Part shown: positions 1 to 8,282 of the stretch, in pieces | Layout: each line of letters opens with the position of its first letter | How positions within the stretch are numbered: position 1 is the first letter of the stretch | IMG/VR virus record: IMGVR_UViG_3300011118_000528 | Coordinates: 1-8,475 of that record | Strand: one strand, 5' to 3' | DNA: 8,475 nt | Translations under genes and position numbers: made by a program | The notes under the pieces: generated by a model | Database searches by the model: none | The model's input: the letters and a program-made list of their open reading frames with translations, nothing else | Told to the model about the DNA's origin: nothing

Positions 1-2360
1 ACAGCTTGGGTAAGTCTCCTCACTCCTCGCTGAGCCATGATAAGGTCGAAGTCAGTACTAGATATTCCTCTGAATACCCTCAATGCCTCATCAACTCCAC
101 CAAACGCCTTAGGATGCATAAGCTCAGCACCACCAAGGAAGCTCCTACCTGAATTCTCAAGATAATTGTAAGGGCCAAAGTTGGTGAACAGTAGTTGCCA
201 TCTAGCTACAGGCATTACTACCCTCCGCTCCATAGCTACCATACGAGCAGAGTATAATATCTTATCAGCTACCCGACTATGCCATGACGAAGACCTGCCA
301 GCCTGCTGCATCCACTTGGTAAGAGGACTGTGAAGATTGTTATATCGAGATAACTCCAGATAGCTACCTATCTTCTTAATCACCTGGTCTGCTGTATCAC
401 CCTTAAGAGCCTCAATAGCCGTGCGAGCAACACCCTTCTTGAACTTAGTTATCTCATATGCCAGCTTCCTAACCACAGCATCAGGTATATCACTCATACC
501 CATAATGTTAAGTATATTGCCTGCTGTTACCTTAGCACCCTGAGCACTAAAGGCATCGCACAGCTGACTGTTAATTCTAGCTAGTCGAGCAGTATCGAAT
601 ACTGCATCAGCTGATACAAAGCCCTTCAGGAACTTTGCTGCTGCTACATCATCTAGATAGTTAAACTCCATAGCAGATGTTCCAAGCCTAACTGCTGGAC
701 GAGTACCATGTTGAGGACTCTTCAATGCTGCTCCAATAGCTGCCTCAACAAGTTCATTAGCATCCTTACCAGTCATGCCTACCCCAAACTTGCCCCTTAT
801 ATCTTTATATGTTCTGCCAGCTACTGCAAAGAAGTCCTTGATACCTTGGTGTCCAAATCTTCTAGACATCTGAGTGAATGTTGCTGGTATAGTGTAGCCA
901 GCTCCAGTTAGCCAGAATGCACTTTTGATAGGAGCAGCAATTACCTTTAAGCCAGCCTTAAATACAGCATCCATTCCAGCAACATATCCATTCTCAAATG
1001 CTACCATCAGACTGCCAATTCTACTTCCTGCCCATTTGAGGCCTCTAGGGAGAACCATCTTAGTAAGTTTACTGCCAACAGCTGCTACTCCTCCCCAGCC
1101 TAACCACATTAGAGGGTCGTAGGCAGAATCCAATATCATCTTCTTCCACCAAGGAGCTTCCCACTCATTGAAAGCCTTAGCATACGAAGACCATGCACTC
1201 TCACCCAGTTCTCGGTAGAACTCATAATGTACTGTTAGTTCCTTATCAGCATCGGATTCAAAGGCAGCAAATATGCCAGCACCACCAATGGCTCCTACTA
1301 TAGCTCCTATGGCTGCTCCAACAGGAATACTAGCACCAAAGCTAAAAGGAGCAAGCATTGCACCTACCGCACCTCCAGCTGCAGCACCTAATGCTACGCC
1401 ATGAACTGCTCCAGCAGCAGGAGCAGGCATATTCATCATTATAGCAGCAGAGATAGGTCTACTGATTTTATCCCACCACTTCTGCATAACTTCCACAGTA
1501 GCCATCATAGGCTGAGTCACCACTAGCTTCAAATAATCCAGTGGAGCTAGTTCTGGTGCTTCAGCCAATATTTCACCTGCTCGGATAAGGCTCATCCTAG
1601 CTGCCTCAATCTCCCATTCTCGTGCTCTCTCAGCAAGCCACTCCTGCTGACTCAATAACTCCTCATCTTCTATCTCCATCTCGCTAAGAATACCCCTAAC
1701 ATCCTCTGCAGTCATTCCAGCTGGAAGCTCAGCCACACCAAAGACAAATGCCTTAGCTATCTCATCTACGGTAAGACGATGAACTCCCTTCATCTCTACC
1801 TCAGGCTCTGTCAATATCTCATTGAGTATGTTAGCCTGAGCATCAAGAACATCACCTCGGTAGTCAACCGGCAGAACATTTGATAGATGCTCAAGCTTGC
1901 CATAAGTTTCATTGAGCCAAGCAGTATCAGCAGCACTCAGCTCAACTCCAGGTGCTACATACTGTAATATATCCTCAGGCTTTTCTATTATATAGTTAGG
2001 GTCTGACAGATATACTGGCAGCACCTGCATAACCTCTAGCTTCCACTCAGCTGTTTGAAATAATACAGCAGCAGCATCAAACTCAGCTATAGCCTGCTCC
2101 TTAAGCTTCTCCAATGGAGCATATTCTCCAGCCTTAGAGAGTAAATCAGGCCAATGAAAAAGCTCTAAGAGCTTTCCAAACCAGCTTGTAACCTCAGGAG
2201 TAGATACAGGTAGCTTCACTTCAGCCTGCTGCAGCTTACCATATAATTGCTGTAGCTCTACCCCTATCTGCTCAAACTCAGCACCAAAGCCAGTATAGTA
2301 TTCTGGTGGCTCGACAGGAGGAGGTAATTTTTCTTTTGTTTCTTCTTTTGTTTCTGCCAT
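1..2360 (-). CDS. Large (>786 aa, runs off left edge) putative internal virion/DNA ejection protein with glycine-zipper hydrophobic hairpin
   Basis: Manual translation from ATG at 2360-2358 (MAETKEETKEKLPPPVEPPEYYTGFG...) shows no stop to position 1 (...AQRGVRRLTQAV). SD-like AGGAGAG upstream; 1 nt after the portal stop. Acidic helical N-terminus, GxxxG hairpin at aa 317-367, then DPLMWLGWGG. The ORF is solid; the function is inferred. Confidence 0.75.
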   Translation of the reverse strand, partial: MAETKEETKEKLPPPVEPPEYYTGFGAEFEQIGVELQQLYGKLQQAEVKLPVSTPEVTSWFGKLLELFHWPDLLSKAGEYAPLEKLKEQAIAEFDAAAVLFQTAEWKLEVMQVLPVYLSDPNYIIEKPEDILQYVAPGVELSAADTAWLNETYGKLEHLSNVLPVDYRGDVLDAQANILNEILTEPEVEMKGVHRLTVDEIAKAFVFGVAELPAGMTAEDVRGILSEMEIEDEELLSQQEWLAERAREWEIEAARMSLIRAGEILAEAPELAPLDYLKLVVTQPMMATVEVMQKWWDKISRPISAAIMMNMPAPAAGAVHGVALGAAAGGAVGAMLAPFSFGASIPVGAAIGAIVGAIGGAGIFAAFESDADKELTVHYEFYRELGESAWSSYAKAFNEWEAPWWKKMILDSAYDPLMWLGWGGVAAVGSKLTKMVLPRGLKWAGSRIGSLMVAFENGYVAGMDAVFKAGLKVIAAPIKSAFWLTGAGYTIPATFTQMSRRFGHQGIKDFFAVAGRTYKDIRGKFGVGMTGKDANELVEAAIGAALKSPQHGTRPAVRLGTSAMEFNYLDDVAAAKFLKGFVSADAVFDTARLARINSQLCDAFSAQGAKVTAGNILNIMGMSDIPDAVVRKLAYEITKFKKGVARTAIEALKGDTADQVIKKIGSYLELSRYNNLHSPLTKWMQQAGRSSSWHSRVADKILYSARMVAMERRVVMPVARWQLLFTNFGPYNYLENSGRSFLGGAELMHPKAFGGVDEALRVFRGISSTDFDLIMAQRGVRRLTQA
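2331..2354. repeat. Perfect 12-bp tandem duplication (ttcttttgtttc x2) encoding ETKE-ETKE
   Basis: Read directly; in frame at the N-terminus of the large ORF. Confidence 0.85.
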
Positions 2361-2361
2361 T

Positions 2362-4152
2362 TTACTCTCCTAATCTAGGCATTGGGCCTCTGCCACTAGT
2401 TAACTGTGGCGCTGCTCCAGGCCTAGCTGTTTGTTGAGTGGGAGCTGCTTGTTCTTCAGGTTGAGGCATCAGTTGCTGCATTACCATAGCAGACATCAGT
2501 TCATAAAGCTTCGAGCCTTTGGCATCACCATGCTTTGCTAAGAATGCAGCCTGCTCATCATAATATCTAATCAAAGCTGCCATAGAATTAGTTGGATGTA
2601 GCGCTGCTTTATCTGCCAGTACTTGTGCTCTCTCTTGCATTGTATCTTCGACATCAGGAAAGAGCTTAGCCATTACATAAGTATAACTCAGCTCAAAAGT
2701 TGGGTTAATCATTCTGGCTGTAGTTGCTCTCTGTATCAGGTCGCCAGGTATCTCCACTTCATAATCGGCTGACACCATACTATATTCAGGAAGGGCAGTA
2801 GGATACTTCCAGCCATAAGGCCTAAGTCCTCTCTCCTTAATATCCTGCAAGTCGTCATTGTCCATGTCTGATAGAGCAGCTATTATCGCCTGATGAAAAG
2901 GCTTCATTACTTGGTTGGCTGAGGCTGCTATCTGACTCATAACATAAGCAGTTATTTGTCCAGCAACCGCACCGTGCATAGCCCAGCTAACTCCACCTCT
3001 CTGCATCATGGCTTCAAGGTCAAGCTGAGTGCTTCTGAGTTCCAACGGTATAGGCGGTGTACCTAGGAAGGTAACATCATCATCAGCAGTACCTCGGAAG
3101 ATTGCTCCTCGCTTGAAGACATCCTCAGGCTTGACGATAGACTTACCACTCCTGCTCCGCTCAAATATTCTGGGTTGGGCAGTGTCCCTCAATAGCTGTA
3201 GACTGAAACTCCACCACTTATTCCAGGTTCGGTAGATGTTCTCATTGGTTGCTAGGATAGATTGACCGAGTTCAGCCTTCCATCTGTCAACCGTTGCACC
3301 AGACTTGGCATTCTGTTCCTGAACCTTCAGTGTAGATGAGTATGTCTCACCAACTGTTCCTCCTTCTGTCAAACTTCCCATATCAGGAAGACCGCCAACT
3401 GGAGATACATAAATAGGTATTCTCTTAAATCTTGTCTGTTCGTACTTGACAAGCTTATTGCCTATTACTATGGCATTCCAGATAGACATGATATAGGGGA
3501 ACTCGTCTGATATATCAGTCCACCAGTAGTCATACACAGTTACATTGCCTTTTCCGTAAGCTGCTACCCACTGATTGGGAGGACTACCGAGGTCCCAGTT
3601 ATTAGCCATAGTTATGTGAATTGCTGATAGCGGACTAATGCTAAAGACACGAGCTACCTCGGACATCCCAAGCATAGCATCCCACATCGGATAGACTTCC
3701 ATGGGATTCAAAGGTTCTTTGTAAGTCCGCTTGCCATCATCTGACATCATACTAATCATAGCATACCAGCCAGTAGCTAGCAGAAATCCAATGAATGTTC
3801 TATTCAAACCTTGTCTTGGATTGGCTCTCCTGAAGGTGTTCTGAGCATCCTGCCAATGAGTCTTGAAGTACTTCCCAACCTCAGCTACGGCAGAAGCTAT
3901 CTCAAGGTCGGTTATGTCATAGTTCTTAACTCTATGAGGGATATCAGTATCAAGGAGATGGAGTACAAGATTATAAAGTGCCCGAGGGTCATTACCTACA
4001 AAGGATTCCATCTTCTCGGTCTTCAGCTCATCAACCATCTCAATAAGCCTATACCAGCGCTTCATAGCCTTGTTCCTAGGCTCCCAGAATGTTTTAAGGT
4101 TATTACAGCGTGTGATTATCTGCTGTGTTTTGTCTGCATAAGTTGTAACCAT
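2362..4152 (-). CDS. Portal protein (head-tail connector, P22/T7-like podovirus type), 596 aa
   Basis: Size and position downstream of TerL; portal-like segments LNPMEVYP, VYDYW, RIPIYVSPVGGLP, LGQSILATNENIYRTWNK...LLRDTAQP; low-complexity Q/P/A C-terminal tail; SD AAGGAG before the ATG. Confidence 0.8.
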   Translation of the reverse strand: MVTTYADKTQQIITRCNNLKTFWEPRNKAMKRWYRLIEMVDELKTEKMESFVGNDPRALYNLVLHLLDTDIPHRVKNYDITDLEIASAVAEVGKYFKTHWQDAQNTFRRANPRQGLNRTFIGFLLATGWYAMISMMSDDGKRTYKEPLNPMEVYPMWDAMLGMSEVARVFSISPLSAIHITMANNWDLGSPPNQWVAAYGKGNVTVYDYWWTDISDEFPYIMSIWNAIVIGNKLVKYEQTRFKRIPIYVSPVGGLPDMGSLTEGGTVGETYSSTLKVQEQNAKSGATVDRWKAELGQSILATNENIYRTWNKWWSFSLQLLRDTAQPRIFERSRSGKSIVKPEDVFKRGAIFRGTADDDVTFLGTPPIPLELRSTQLDLEAMMQRGGVSWAMHGAVAGQITAYVMSQIAASANQVMKPFHQAIIAALSDMDNDDLQDIKERGLRPYGWKYPTALPEYSMVSADYEVEIPGDLIQRATTARMINPTFELSYTYVMAKLFPDVEDTMQERAQVLADKAALHPTNSMAALIRYYDEQAAFLAKHGDAKGSKLYELMSAMVMQQLMPQPEEQAAPTQQTARPGAAPQLTSGRGPMPRLGE

Positions 4153-4163
4153 ATTATTTCTCC

Positions 4164-4406
4164 TTATAGTATAGTCCCCAACACTAACCTAACGGCTCCT
4201 GCAATAGCAAATATAAGCCCAGCAAAGCCGACTGCAGTTCCAAAGATATAGTAATGGTACTCCTTCTTTATCATATTCTTTACCTTAGTACCTGACTCAT
4301 ATCTTGGCTGCCAAGGACAGAATCCTTCACCAATGCCTATGATGATAGTATGCCACTCTTCAGGAGTATTCATAAAGGTATATGCCCACTTAAACGGAGG
4401 AATCAT
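4164..4406 (-). CDS. Small membrane protein, 80 aa, with two ExHxxIxGxxxGF repeats; function unknown
   Basis: ATGA overlap with the upstream stop (4403-4406); C-terminal hydrophobic helix YYIFGTAVGFAGLIFAIAGAVRLVLGTIL; fills the operon gap exactly. Confidence 0.75.
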   Translation of the reverse strand: MIPPFKWAYTFMNTPEEWHTIIIGIGEGFCPWQPRYESGTKVKNMIKKEYHYYIFGTAVGFAGLIFAIAGAVRLVLGTIL

Positions 4407-4987
4407 ATTATTACAACTGCTCCTTCTAGAGGATAGAACTGAGGTGCGTGTTCTTCATGGAAGAATAGATTGTCAGTCTGAGGCTCAAGCAGCATTACCT
4501 TGCCATTAGGAAATATCACCAGATTGTAGGCATGACCAGACTTATAATCTAATACTATACCAACCTGATTAACTCCCCACTGGTCAGAGCTAGCTTTGAG
4601 TGAGATAGCAAAGTTGCCGCAGCGGTAGAACTTGTGATACTCAAATGAGTCAACCCAATCCCAGGCTATAAAGTCAATGAATGTATCCTTGTCAACTAGA
4701 TGAAACTCAGCGCCAAGAGGAAGCCTTATAACAGGAGCATTTATCTTTGCAAGGATACTACTAACCCAGACAGTGTCCTTCTCTACAATGTTCGTGAGTT
4801 CTGGAGGAGCAGGCCTAGGTACAAGTAGCTTAAGCTTCTTTATCATATCATCCGCCTTAGCCAGTTCTGCATCAAGGTCTATCAGCCTCTTTTGGCATTG
4901 AGCATAGTTAGCAGAGCACCGCTCATACTTCTGCTTAGAGCCTGAGCAGAACAAGTTGTCAATAAACTCCTGCCATCTAAAAGCCAC
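4403..4987 (-). CDS. Papain/transglutaminase-like cysteine peptidase (resembles the MOA agglutinin C-terminal domain) with N-terminal coiled coil, 194 aa
   Basis: GTG start with SD AAGGAG at 7-nt spacing; motifs YRC123GNFA, GH152AYN, LLE168PQTD match the Cys-His-Glu triad pattern (DCDDFA...HAxN...EPQxD); Pro-rich linker PRPAPP separates the domains. Confidence 0.75.
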   Translation of the reverse strand: MAFRWQEFIDNLFCSGSKQKYERCSANYAQCQKRLIDLDAELAKADDMIKKLKLLVPRPAPPELTNIVEKDTVWVSSILAKINAPVIRLPLGAEFHLVDKDTFIDFIAWDWVDSFEYHKFYRCGNFAISLKASSDQWGVNQVGIVLDYKSGHAYNLVIFPNGKVMLLEPQTDNLFFHEEHAPQFYPLEGAVVII

Positions 4988-5177
4988 TGTCTCGCTCCTT
5001 CTTGTGTGCTATTGTTCGCTCAGCAAACCACCAAGTAATAATCGGAATAGCCATACTCAGAAACCAAGTTGGCAGAGTCCTCCCGCTTGATACACAGTCG
5101 GCTATTACCGCAGCAAAGATGATAGTAACTGCAGGTCTTGGTAGCGCCCTAATAAAGTTACCTAACCAATCATTCAT
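4977..5177 (-). CDS. Putative holin, 2 TM helices, 66 aa
   Basis: Two hydrophobic segments (PAVTIIFAAVIA; WFLSMAIPIITWWF), RPxxT and WWFxxR motifs reminiscent of the GTA 3TM-holin-like family, charged C-terminal tail; SD AAGGAG. Confidence 0.6.
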   Translation of the reverse strand: MNDWLGNFIRALPRPAVTIIFAAVIADCVSSGRTLPTWFLSMAIPIITWWFAERTIAHKKERDSGF

Positions 5178-5186
5178 GTTACTCCT

Positions 5187-6866
5187 TTATCCCCAGCCTT
5201 CAGGCCAGCCTGCTGAACCGACATAACCTCGCTGGACTGGCTGAGCATCTCGACATACTATTCCTATTGCTCCGCAGTCATGGTGGTCGTCTGCACCTAC
5301 TACAAGAATACCACTCTTGATTGAGGCATTTCTGCGGATATTCTTACACTGACTCCAGAACCTCAAATCCTGACAGTCAATATGGTCAAGGTGTCTGCTA
5401 ACCTCAGTAATCATATAGGGCTTAGTTGATAAGTTGGTTTGCCAACCTACAGCTCTAATTAGTTTCCCTGTCCGCACATCCTCTCGCCAATACAAATCTG
5501 GCCAATCTCTCAGATGACTAACTATATCCAGATTGTCCTCAGGTGCTATGACTGCCCCATTGTAGTAGCGAGCCACTTCTTTCATTAGTATAGCCATCTC
5601 CCACTCATCATAGAAGCCTGCCAGTGTAGCACAGTGTCTCATAATAGGCGGTATCTCCTTACCTTCCTTATCGGTATATCCGTCCTCAAAGTGCCAGACA
5701 TGGCCTACTGACTCTGATGTCTTCCCCTTACCTGGGTCTATGGGAACTACATAGCTTAGCCCTTCCTCTACATCCTGCCAGATATCCAGAGTAGCTGACA
5801 CAACACCTTTGGTTTGACTATCAACTCCAGTAATAGGTAATTGCTTCTGAGCAGGGATACATTGTCGAACCTTATCAGTTATGATGTCAGAGCTGTAGGC
5901 TTGGTCGCCAGCAACAAGAAAACAGCTCTCATCATCTTCAGGAAATTCTTGCTCGAATAGCAGAACCGTATCACCGCTCCGTCTCAGACTTGCCATCTCC
6001 GCCTTCTTGTATCTCCTCCATCGGAGTTTAGCCATAGACTCAAATTCAGAAAAGCCATACTCATACAGAAACCGCTTCATCAGTATTACTTCATCTGACT
6101 TCAAGTTTGGCAGGGGTTCTACATCATCTCCGTCAAGACAGAAAGGGTCATCTACATACATCACATACTCAGGATGGATAAACCAGGTATAGAAGTGGTG
6201 TTTGTAGACTGACTGTCCAACTGTTGTTCCTTCCTTAGCTGCCCTATACATATCACAGTGAGGATTGTCTTCACCGTTAGCAGTTGATTGGACTCTGATT
6301 TTAGTTCCAAGCTTCATCGGCACACGCTGAACAGCAGAGCTAAATACTTGCTCTTGAGTCCCGATTAGCCAGAAGGCAAACTCATCCATTAGTAGATTAT
6401 GTATAGCTTCTCCTCTACCAAGTGTATAACTCCTTGAGCTGAAGATATACATGATAGAATAGAAGTTATTATCCTGACTCTCCCATGTTAGTTCCTCAGC
6501 ACTCTTATGGTCTAACTTAGCAACTGAGGGTATCTTTCTTTCCAGATGCTGATGAAAGCGCTTAGCCTTGATGATAAGCCGTTTAGCGCTAGTCTCATCG
6601 TAGCTAATGATAACTGAGACAGTTCCATTGATAGTAATGTTGTCAAGATAGAAGTCTGCCAGATGCAATGATGTAGCACCCACCTGAGCTGGCTTAACAT
6701 AGATGTCTCGAGGACCTGAGTTATCCAGCATATCTGCCTGAATAGGGTTAAGGATAAACGGCACAAGCTGACGCTCCTTGTTCTCTATCTGCAGTAGCGA
6801 CTCCATCATGAGCCGTCTGTTAGAGAATAGGGCTTCTACAGCTTCGTCTTTATTAACAGCTTGCAC
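5187..6866 (-). CDS. terL: Terminase large subunit, 559 aa
   Basis: GTG start with SD GGGAGG; adenine-binding PFILNPIQ, P-loop YVKPAQVGATS, GRG...LLMDEFAFW (Walker B), STANG coupling motif, WRRxK...FEQEFP, RNase H-like nuclease residues YVVPIDPGKG, APEDN, GADDHHD. Confidence 0.95.
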   Translation of the reverse strand: MQAVNKDEAVEALFSNRRLMMESLLQIENKERQLVPFILNPIQADMLDNSGPRDIYVKPAQVGATSLHLADFYLDNITINGTVSVIISYDETSAKRLIIKAKRFHQHLERKIPSVAKLDHKSAEELTWESQDNNFYSIMYIFSSRSYTLGRGEAIHNLLMDEFAFWLIGTQEQVFSSAVQRVPMKLGTKIRVQSTANGEDNPHCDMYRAAKEGTTVGQSVYKHHFYTWFIHPEYVMYVDDPFCLDGDDVEPLPNLKSDEVILMKRFLYEYGFSEFESMAKLRWRRYKKAEMASLRRSGDTVLLFEQEFPEDDESCFLVAGDQAYSSDIITDKVRQCIPAQKQLPITGVDSQTKGVVSATLDIWQDVEEGLSYVVPIDPGKGKTSESVGHVWHFEDGYTDKEGKEIPPIMRHCATLAGFYDEWEMAILMKEVARYYNGAVIAPEDNLDIVSHLRDWPDLYWREDVRTGKLIRAVGWQTNLSTKPYMITEVSRHLDHIDCQDLRFWSQCKNIRRNASIKSGILVVGADDHHDCGAIGIVCRDAQPVQRGYVGSAGWPEGWG

Positions 6867-6868
6867 TA

Positions 6869-7111
6869 TTACTTTATCCTCCCATTTAATCTGATAAGGA
6901 GCGTAGTAAGCTCCGTTACTGCTTTAGTAAGTCCCTCACGAGATTCCTGGTCTCGGTCAATAATGTTCTTCATCTGATCTTGCATAAATACCCTATCCTG
7001 CCTTATCTGCTCCGTACTACTCTTCCTATCTCTCCTATACATTATGAAGATGATTACTGCTAATGCTCCTCCTACACCAAGACTGCATATAGCTTCAATA
7101 GGTATCTCCAT
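6869..7111 (-). CDS. Single-TM plus coiled-coil protein, BhlA/UviB-like holin architecture, 80 aa
   Basis: N-terminal TM (SLGVGGALAVIIFIMY) followed by RRDRK and a heptad-like helix; TAATG overlap at 7111; SD AAGGAG. Confidence 0.55.
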   Translation of the reverse strand: MEIPIEAICSLGVGGALAVIIFIMYRRDRKSSTEQIRQDRVFMQDQMKNIIDRDQESREGLTKAVTELTTLLIRLNGRIK

Positions 7112-7317: not shown

Positions 7318-7858
7318 CAGGAGGTTTGTCCCTTACTGTTACCTTGTCTGTTCGGCTAAATTCAAGAATCTTATCTTGGTTATCAGCCACTAACTTAGCA
7401 AAGTTAAATTCTCCACTTCCAACACCCTTCATAACTTGTTCCAGTATCTGTAACTGTTGTGGAGTGTATGCTGAGCGGAGCTTGAGCAAGTATTCATGGC
7501 TCTGTTTAGGCAGGACTTCATTGTAGATAGCCTGCTTGAGTATTCGGTAGTCCTTCTCCAACACTAACCTGAAGTTGCGGAAGAAGTCCAACTCAATGTA
7601 CTCCTTGCTTAATTCCTTCCTAATCTCAGGAACCTGAAGCTCGATAACATTAAAGCCTTCATCCTGCCGCTGCTCCTCCAGCCAACCAACAGTTAGCCCA
7701 AGCATATAGAGTGATTCTTCTGGGTTGAAGCCACAGGCTAGATAGCCCATGTATCTTGCTCGGTTATCGTCTTTTCTCCAGGGTATAAGCGTAGTTGCAA
7801 TGCTAACTTCTTTTGGAGTATCAGAGCCTGTAGGCAGAATCGCCTTAGAATTATCCAT
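7298..7858 (-). CDS. terS: Putative terminase small subunit (HTH plus helical oligomerisation region), 186 aa
   Basis: Start revised to ATG 7858 (MDNSKAIL..., SD-like AAGGGT, 8-bp overlap with the upstream stop); HTH-like RARYMGYLACGFNPEESLYMLGLTVGWLEEQRQDEGF; size and position upstream of terL. Confidence 0.6.
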   Translation of the reverse strand: MDNSKAILPTGSDTPKEVSIATTLIPWRKDDNRARYMGYLACGFNPEESLYMLGLTVGWLEEQRQDEGFNVIELQVPEIRKELSKEYIELDFFRNFRLVLEKDYRILKQAIYNEVLPKQSHEYLLKLRSAYTPQQLQILEQVMKGVGSGEFNFAKLVADNQDKILEFSRTDKVTVRDKPPDGEIQS

Positions 7859-8246
7859 CTTTACCCTTACATATGGCTGACAACTTGATTCTGTAATCAC
7901 TTCGCAAATCTTTGATACATACTGGAGAATCGCTGTATAGTTGGTCGTAGTACTCCAGCACCAAGTTAGCCATAGTTTTCTTAATAATCAGGTAAGGCAG
8001 CAGAAGTTCTATAGTATCTATAGCATCCTTGCCACGCCACACTAATCTATATATTTTCTTTCGGCCATACCTTTTCTGGCCATAAATGTGCCCAGGTAGT
8101 AAGGCATTGATATAGTGAATAACACGCTCATCAGAGTTGGTAATCTGAGCGATAATGGATGAGTTAAATCCATTCCTTGAAATCATCAGGCAGCCTTCGC
8201 CATCGAAGAAGCCCGCTACATATGCTAGACTCTCGTTAGCCTCCAT
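7851..8246 (-). CDS. Single-motif LAGLIDADG homing endonuclease-like protein, free-standing
   Basis: LAYVAGFFDGEGCL motif near the N-terminus, IxNSD, YRLVW and LLPYLIIKK motifs. Start most likely ATG 8246 or 8249, because ATG 8258 lies inside the predicted -10 box. Confidence 0.9.
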   Translation of the reverse strand: MEANESLAYVAGFFDGEGCLMISRNGFNSSIIAQITNSDERVIHYINALLPGHIYGQKRYGRKKIYRLVWRGKDAIDTIELLLPYLIIKKTMANLVLEYYDQLYSDSPVCIKDLRSDYRIKLSAICKGKDG

Positions 8247-8253
8247 CATGACT

Positions 8254-8282
8254 AGCATAACACAATGCGATTATCAATGCAA
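8254..8282 (-). promoter_or_regulatory. sigma70-type promoter for the packaging operon, probably giving a leaderless mRNA
   Basis: Minus strand TTGCAT (8282-8277), 17 nt, TATGCT (8259-8254) with extended -10 TGn; ATG codons follow after gaps of 4 and 7 nt. Confidence 0.6.

Follow-up and report, generated by a model that had tools for sequence, protein, structure and literature searches.

Phage lysis cassettes are, in layout, the best described relatives of the locus analysed here. In the S-R-Rz/Rz1 cassette of lambda, a small membrane protein, a soluble enzyme without signal sequence and a further membrane protein are encoded one after another, and in the XhlA-XhlB-XlyA module of the Bacillus prophages PBSX and SPbeta a small tail-anchored protein with a soluble N-terminal domain and a two-segment holin-like protein stand beside the lysin. 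The CHAP, NlpC/P60, Amidase_5 and PeiW/PeiP enzymes are phage lysins that use a Cys-His nucleophile on a papain-like core. A papain-like core of another type forms the C-terminal protease and dimerisation domain of MOA (Marasmius oreades agglutinin) and PSL1a, two toxin lectins of fungi that are classed as chimerolectins. In the MOA literature this fold counts as unique, and the proteins as an emerging lectin family of fungi (PMC8244254). The locus described here combines a layout of the first kind with a protease of the last kind. It lies in the virus record IMGVR_UViG_3300011118_000528, whose 8475 nucleotides (hereafter the window, meaning the whole stretch that was analysed) are the complete IMG/VR contig and carry a single minus-strand operon. 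Following the gene for the terminase large subunit (terL), this operon contains three short genes, which we call ORF-A, ORF-B and ORF-C:

4977-5177, minus strand: ORF-A, 66 amino acids, ATG start
4403-4987, minus strand: ORF-B, 194 amino acids, GTG start
4164-4406, minus strand: ORF-C, 80 amino acids, ATG start

As a preliminary description of the window had reported, the three genes overlap, ORF-A and ORF-B by 11 bases (4977-4987) and ORF-B and ORF-C by the 4 bases ATGA (4403-4406). They are apparently translationally coupled. Ribosome-binding sites of the AAGGAG type are found ahead of ORF-A and ORF-B, and the one of ORF-C is more distant. The ratio of nonsynonymous to synonymous substitution rates (dN/dS) against two relatives was 0.19 for ORF-A, 0.11-0.21 for ORF-B and 0.17-0.32 for ORF-C. 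Because these values are low and comparable to those of terL (0.07-0.11), we conclude that all three are real genes under purifying selection. We see about an even chance that the cassette is a holin/endolysin-type lysis module with a new, MOA-like cysteine peptidase as its lysin, which would most likely cut peptidoglycan peptides. The description had likewise placed the protease in the slot typical of an endolysin, and a papain-fold peptidase does sit between small membrane proteins. Its comparison of the enzyme with the transglutaminase-like PeiW/PeiP proteases had to be abandoned, as the specific homology of ORF-B is to the protease domain of the fungal MOA and PSL1a.

ORF-B consists of an N-terminal module (residues 1-56, 4820-4987), a coiled coil with a conserved SGxK/YE motif that ends in a Pro-rich linker, and a MOA-like papain-fold cysteine peptidase domain (residues 57-194, 4406-4819). 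The structure model shows the same parts, with an N-terminal helix at 15-55, the proline-rich linker and an alpha/beta domain. Neither a signal peptide nor a membrane segment was found in ORF-B. When a domain profile of 29 diverse relatives was compared with all PDB sequences, only the C-terminal protease domains of MOA (E=4e-8) and PSL1a (E=5e-6) matched. A model of the domain alone (predicted local distance difference test score, pLDDT, 85; predicted template-modelling score, pTM, 0.82) was searched with Foldseek, and the top 8 matches were all MOA/PSL1a structures (E ~1e-5, probability 1.0, template-modelling score 0.66-0.69, root-mean-square deviation ~3.1 Å), the next-ranked ones having E values of 0.2 or worse. 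Foldseek with the full-length model returned nothing significant because the long helix dominates. On its own, ORF-B of the window stays under the Pfam cutoffs for PF18022 and PF18021 (E=0.0069 and 0.066), two families that are placed among the papain-like ones (PMC10318531). PF18022 is a precomputed match in at least 30 relatives of ORF-B, and those at loci L032 and L041 score 5e-8.

The motifs D-C-x-x-F-A, H-A-Y-N and E-P-Q bring Cys123, His152, Glu168 and Gln170 of ORF-B into register with Cys215, His257, Glu274 and Gln276 of MOA, whose roles have been shown experimentally (PMC8244254). ORF-B thus has in common with MOA/PSL1a the Cys-His-Glu triad and the E-P-Q motif with its validated Gln (PMC8244254), as well as an aromatic residue at the position of MOA Trp208. 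Alignments of 32 and 29 sequences show Cys123, His152 and Gln170 without exception and Glu168 with at least 90% conservation, which bears out the Cys123-His152-Glu168 triad read from the window in the preliminary description. Asn140, Asp147, Tyr148 and Tyr154 do not vary there either, and down to 24% identity all these residues change little or not at all. The surroundings of the catalytic Cys are less uniform. Most relatives share D-C-(D/E)-(D/N)-F-A with MOA, i.e. acidic residues flank the Cys, whereas the clade of the window has lost them and shows R-C-G-N (residues 122-125, region of 4619-4621), with Arg and Gly at these places. ORF-B also differs from MOA/PSL1a in its N-terminus, since no ricin-B lectin domain is present in it and the 56-residue coiled coil stands instead, and in its origin, as MOA and PSL1a are fungal and ORF-B comes from viruses of prokaryotes, where it adjoins membrane proteins. 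Because profile, fold and aligned catalytic motifs match MOA/PSL1a, ORF-B, on its sequence and predicted model, genuinely belongs among the papain-fold peptidases of the MOA-like branch (PF18021/PF18022).

Other assignments of ORF-B were tried and rejected. CHAP, NlpC/P60, Amidase_5, C71/PeiW/PeiP and transglutaminase gave no significant match in Pfam, PDB sequences or Foldseek (the NlpC/P60 structure 4xcm reached E=0.3-1.3), and no lysozyme, amidase, CHAP, NlpC/P60, M15 or M23 match was obtained from Pfam, PHROGs or Foldseek. ORF-B differs in fold from the papain-fold wall hydrolases, since beta-strand 1' is permuted and reversed in the MOA type to which it belongs (PMC10318531). Prohead proteases of the S78, U35, U9 or herpesvirus type were also rejected, as there was no match in Pfam or PHROGs, the position of the module varies and relatives have a separate S78 protease. 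Finally, ORF-A, ORF-B, ORF-C and their relatives gave no PADLOC match as anti-phage defence genes.

The family to which ORF-B belongs is large. Metagenomes contained 82 close homologues, none informatively named, and no homologue was present in 50,697 deposited phage genomes. An exhaustive profile search recovered 2,418 clusters (50% identity) at E<=1e-3 and 840 at E<=1e-10. Most members are 130-240 amino acids long with the domain at the C-terminus. Homologues in BFVD come from Pyrobaculum filamentous virus 1, which is the best viral structural match (E=2e-9), and from a klosneuvirus. We found no paper that links MOA-type domains to phages, and this domain class is not included in a 2025 census of viral lytic proteins (PMC12596118).

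One cluster of the family, P0098, carries an N-acetylmuramoyl-L-alanine amidase domain (Amidase_2, 41.7 bits, cutoff 26) fused to a MOA-like domain that is 37% identical to ORF-B over 142 amino acids. The fusion is present in two samples and is followed by a 63-residue, two-segment holin-like ORF. Lysins with two domains, an amidase and a Cys peptidase, are common and P0098 has a similar architecture. The fusion indicates that at least some members of the family work on murein hosts. A search for further amidase fusions returned this single protein cluster. P0180 has a weak SLT-like N-terminus, and apart from these two no Amidase_2-like or SLT-like ORF was found in all 210 loci. In 2 of 148 representatives the N-terminus carries a membrane segment that looks like a signal-anchor-release (SAR) domain. 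Inteins or LAGLIDADG insertions sit exactly at the catalytic Cys of the ORF-B family gene in P0166, P0127, P0209 and P0162; the one in P0166 shows the termini typical of an intein, its +1 residue being the catalytic Cys, and the one in P0162 appears degenerate. As a rule, inteins insert into active sites that are important and highly conserved.

The two partners of ORF-B were identified as small membrane proteins, in agreement with the preliminary description. ORF-A has two hydrophobic stretches, at approximately residues 15-31 and 37-52, and ends in a charged tail (ERTIAHKKERDSGF); its family is marked by the motifs RPA...IIFAAVIA and WF...WWF.ER. It looks holin-like, being small, with membrane segments and a charged C-terminus, and adjoining a candidate lysin gene. 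No known holin family was recognized for it in Pfam or PHROGs, with at least 12 family members scanned, and no homologue was found in the 50,697 phage records. At locus L013 ORF-A has been swapped, with only 31% identity to the allele of the window, while ORF-B, ORF-C and terL are 73-86% identical. Exchange of the holin-like gene between close relatives is also known from lambda-type cassettes.

ORF-C comprises a soluble N-terminal domain of about 55 amino acids, followed by a single C-terminal membrane anchor. Glu17, His19, Gly24, His51, Tyr52 and Tyr53 are invariant, and no lipobox or signal peptide was detected in 14 aligned members. The protein matched nothing in Pfam, PHROGs, PADLOC or deposited phages. 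We rejected ORF-C as a spanin, as its anchor is C-terminal only, with no N-terminal anchor (i-spanin) and no lipobox (o-/u-spanin). Its plan recalls XhlA of PBSX by analogy only: the two have no sequence similarity, and gene order and enzyme also differ between the two modules. At a distant locus, one membrane neighbour of an ORF-B family gene weakly matches the PHROG "hemolysin" family (E=0.008), which we take to be XhlA-like. Judged by sequence, none of the three cassette proteins is in a described holin, spanin or lysin family; in this respect the cassette differs from those of the lambda type, and its enzyme belongs to a family that is unreported as lysin.

Relatives in IMG/VR numbered 114 for ORF-A, 115 for ORF-C and 39 for ORF-B. 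Among relatives at least 39% identical to ORF-B, the order A-B-C recurs in unrelated backbones. It is found in the gap between terL and the putative portal gene in the lineage of the window, directly upstream of terS-terL-portal in L007, and between an adaptor-like and a tail gene in L004, a provirus-like element of ~20 kb. A position just upstream of terS is another likeness to lambda-type cassettes. The trio is not obligate. Of 151 new A/C loci, 92 had ORF-A overlapping ORF-C without ORF-B, the commonest arrangement, and 24 had ORF-B between A and C (ABC or ABCC). A pair usually without any enzyme is a further difference from the cassettes of lambda type. Examples of phages with A-C and without ORF-B are IMGVR_UViG_3300031275_000001 and 3300031624_000006. 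One backbone exists both with ORF-B (L007) and without it (L073, L074 and L083). In the backbone of the window B-C is always present, and ORF-A is missing in L017 and L019. ORF-C is therefore the constant element of the module, ORF-A is exchangeable and ORF-B is a facultative insert, the last because the A-C pair is more widespread and usually lacks it. The synteny whose conservation the preliminary description had proposed to test was thus recovered as far as gene order and movement between unrelated backbones are concerned, but not as a fixed set of three genes. L021 has two copies of the ORF-C family (10489-10833 and 11427-11690), three further loci are in ABCC order and three in CAC order.

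This distribution bears on the possibility that ORF-B is a protease of the virion or of its morphogenesis, needed for the maturation of the head or ejected with the DNA-delivery proteins, which would explain its location between terL and the putative portal. Within the window ORF-B does lie in a block of packaging and head genes followed by a giant gene for an internal protein, and relatives encode polyvalent giant proteins with an ART-PolyVal domain. However, the module also occupies non-structural positions, such as the one upstream of terS, ORF-B is optional within one backbone, and the flanking membrane proteins would be left unexplained. Moreover, L032 and L041, which contain relatives of ORF-B, also carry an S78 prohead protease, and because the relatives have this enzyme in addition, ORF-B is not the standard prohead protease. 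We consider a virion role very improbable.

Membrane proteins accompany the ORF-B family well beyond the A-B-C module. Small membrane-protein ORFs within 600 bp of ORF-B family genes amounted to 52/137 versus 69/553 elsewhere (odds ratio 4.3, p=7e-11, the p-value being indicative only as the 31 loci are phylogenetically related). The enrichment was seen in 28 of the 31 loci and involves several unrelated families of membrane proteins, also around distant relatives without A and C. Such neighbours from several unrelated families are a classic signature of lysis cassettes. The preliminary description had regarded homologues of the protease unlinked to holins as evidence against a lysis role; distant ones do lack A and C, yet they still stand beside other small membrane proteins.

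We also looked for another lysin. In agreement with the preliminary description, no glycosidase or amidase domain was detected by Pfam or PHROGs in any ORF of the window. A complete, circular-consistent genome of 43.9 kb, whose ORF-B is 84% identical to that of the window, has no other lysin or holin in Pfam/PHROGs, so the scan of a whole genome for a canonical endolysin, which that description had called for, also came out empty. The same was true for a lysin in ~150 kb of other contexts and for a peptidoglycan hydrolase in ~300 kb of context. Between the versions of one backbone with and without ORF-B, the ORFs that differ showed no lysin-like features by eye.

If the cassette is a lysis module with ORF-B as its lysin, the three genes would be expressed late, in the manner of a holin/endolysin-type cassette. 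ORF-B, soluble and without signal sequence, would accumulate in the cytoplasm, probably as a dimer formed through its coiled-coil N-terminus; we suggest dimerisation because the active site of MOA needs a dimer. ORF-A, with its two membrane segments, and/or the tail-anchored ORF-C would then open a lesion in the membrane through which ORF-B may reach the envelope. There the Cys123/His152/Glu168 triad, together with Gln170 and an aromatic residue in the oxyanion-hole position, would cleave peptide bonds, the substrate being most likely the stem peptides or cross-links of peptidoglycan. ORF-C may be a specific partner, because it always accompanies ORF-A and/or ORF-B, and could serve either as another subunit of the holin type, comparable to XhlA of PBSX, or as a dock or regulator for ORF-B.

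Several observations weigh against such a lysin. ORF-A and ORF-C remain outside every known holin family in Pfam and PHROGs. The A-C pair stands without ORF-B or any adjacent enzyme in 92 of 151 loci; ORF-B is then dispensable for whatever A and C do, and the phages without it need a lysin elsewhere. The amidase fusion is one protein cluster from a distant subfamily. These phages have diverged so far that Pfam and PHROGs could miss a canonical lysin, and the absence of canonical lysins in such genomes is weak evidence. The R-C-G-N sequence of the window clade may point to a shifted metal dependence or substrate; MOA is activated through a binuclear Ca/Mn site. Lastly, the coiled-coil module is also found on a non-enzymatic Cys-rich domain, which would fit the logic of docking or of an effector equally well as that of a lysin.

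The last point leads to another explanation, in which ORF-B stays in the cytoplasm or close to the membrane, docked to A-C through its coiled coil, and does not degrade the wall; it would be a protease, a deamidase or an acyl-transferase. Its target would be ORF-A or ORF-C, whose processing would time lysis like a switch, or else a protein of the host, with takeover, exclusion or anti-defence as the purpose. ORF-B has no export signal, as this explanation expects, and it has a weak Pfam match to a papain-fold glutamine deamidase toxin family (E=2e-3). Its SGYK coiled-coil module is separable, forming an overlapping ORF of its own in L004, L023 and L024, and in L187 (3525-3974), L088 (4391-4825) and L089 (2011-2532) the slot between A and C holds its fusion to an unrelated Cys-rich domain that resembles a zinc ribbon. 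The soluble domain of ORF-C, with its invariant Glu, His and Tyr, is always beside ORF-B in the window clade and would offer a dock, and A-C pairs that exist without ORF-B are also in line with this explanation. On the other hand, distant homologues that lack A, C and the fused module still adjoin other small membrane proteins, both the SAR-like variants and the fusion with an amidase suggest a target outside, in the wall, and the absence of PADLOC matches does not favour a part in defence or anti-defence. A docked enzyme of this kind seems to us possible, though unlikely.

The nature of the host matters for the choice of substrate. The genes around ORF-B relatives are mostly of bacterial-phage type, including sigma-70, bacterial RecA, DnaB/DnaG, PolA, a DnaA-like protein, RecT and a DUF5681 terS, and relatives encode a fibre protein of the type of Ralstonia podophage GP4. 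Identity to bacterial phages is only 21-29% for terL, PolA and the portal of L004, with terL nearest to podophages of Gram-negative bacteria. Searches that might have helped with the window itself were negative: megablast found no match, no tRNAs were found, cluster names contained no taxonomy, and scans for sigma-70 promoters and terminators were at or below the level of shuffled sequence. Overall we lean towards a bacterial host for the lineage of the window.

There are also archaeal hints, namely a contig binned in a metagenome-assembled genome (MAG), the CetZ-type tubulin of L004 and the homologue in Pyrobaculum filamentous virus 1. The tubulin gene (L058 17600-18778, identical with L059 13283-14461) lies inside the L004 element. 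Its best PDB match is 4b46 (4.6e-47), while FtsZ reached ~1e-7; we presume that 4b46, together with 4b45 and 3zid, is a CetZ structure. Its cluster has 88 near-identical members on many contigs. In the L004 element the CetZ gene, two Ig-like surface proteins and a protein of 1,165 amino acids stand on the opposite strand between terL and portal. A walk along a 445-kb contig (Ga0568904_0000006) gave mixed signals of bacterial and CetZ type.

These hints have to be weighed for a third explanation, according to which A and C rupture the membrane of a host without peptidoglycan (an archaeon, or a wall-less or S-layer bacterium) and ORF-B is an optional protease of S-layer or envelope proteins. MOA is a genuine protease with proteins as substrate (PMC8244254). 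Among viral structures the archaeal virus protein mentioned above matches ORF-B best, 185,579 species genomes gave a single match, a viral contig in the MAG bin of an "uncultured archaeon", and the CetZ-type tubulin would also agree with such a host. That ORF-B is optional beside A-C would be expected if rupture of the membrane alone suffices, and the lack of a peptidoglycan hydrolase in the examined contexts would need no further cause. Against this, the flanks of L004 are bacterial in appearance (RadC, RarA/MgsA, UvrC and a prepilin peptidase of PilD type whose N-domain is the bacterial one), the bacterial-phage-type genes of the relatives and the affinity of terL point the same way, and the Amidase_2 fusion shows murein hosts for some family members. 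The MAG bin is weak evidence of host. The preliminary description had suggested a proteinaceous wall and named Dehalococcoidia as one possible host; nothing that we found points there, as the sole informative fusion is with a peptidoglycan amidase and the neighbours are mostly of bacterial-phage type. We judge cutting of an S-layer or envelope protein to be quite unlikely, and a lysin acting on peptidoglycan remains our preferred explanation.

The operon of the window consists of a LAGLIDADG endonuclease, ORFs of 200 and 68 amino acids, a membrane/coiled-coil protein of 80 amino acids, terL, ORF-A, ORF-B, ORF-C, an ORF of 596 amino acids and a large ORF. Apart from the cassette, the following members were characterised:

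7851-8258, minus strand: free-standing homing endonuclease of LAGLIDADG type (PHROG 5046, E=7e-21)
6869-7111, minus strand: protein of 80 amino acids with N-terminal membrane segment, basic patch and coiled coil, directly upstream of terL
5187-6866, minus strand: terL, terminase large subunit, 559 amino acids (Pfam Terminase_6N, E=7e-4), same operon, upstream of ORF-A
2362-4152, minus strand: ORF of 596 amino acids, putative portal by position and size only, kept in relatives
1-2360, minus strand: N-terminal 786 amino acids of a large protein whose gene continues beyond the window, with a Gly/Ala-rich hydrophobic zipper

Of the two flanks named in the preliminary description, terL was confirmed by a tblastn match to annotated terL genes (E=2e-18). 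The portal could not be verified, as the 596-residue ORF had no match in Pfam, PHROGs, phage tblastn or PDB; its dN/dS is comparable to that of terL and of the three cassette genes. A protein of 80-89 amino acids with an N-terminal membrane segment precedes terL in every member of the backbone of the window, including L017 and L019, which lack ORF-A. The holin gene of T7 lies just before the terminase genes, a comparable position, and the protein at 6869-7111 may be another holin-type component.

The large protein at 1-2360 is probably an internal virion or ejection protein. We rejected it as a lysin, as weak matches to the PHROG families "tail-associated lysin" and "tape measure" cover its Gly/Ala zipper only. 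Its gene, which follows that of the putative portal, forms one ORF of 2,088 amino acids in the complete 43.9-kb relative. In L001 (12600-18759) it is split into parts of 914, 554 and 590 amino acids, in other lineages it reaches at least 1,900 amino acids, one with an ART-PolyVal match, and L057 1-223 also belongs to it. The 43.9-kb relative has free-standing LAGLIDADG genes at other positions (L053 16662-17102 and L057 11369-11824).

The MOA-type protease domain is not peculiar to fungi, as bacterial viruses, an archaeal virus and a giant virus encode close relatives in sequence and structure that share its unusual active-site features. The A-C pair, present on more than 100 viral contigs with no cultured representative and belonging to no known family, is a candidate two-component holin. 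Should ORF-B cut S-layer or envelope proteins, the cassette would be the first proteolytic lysis system of its kind beyond the pseudomurein-specific PeiW/PeiP. If ORF-B is a lysin, the family would add a new and large catalytic domain class (~2,400 clusters) to the endolysin repertoire, and with it new enzymes for antibacterial and biotechnological use.

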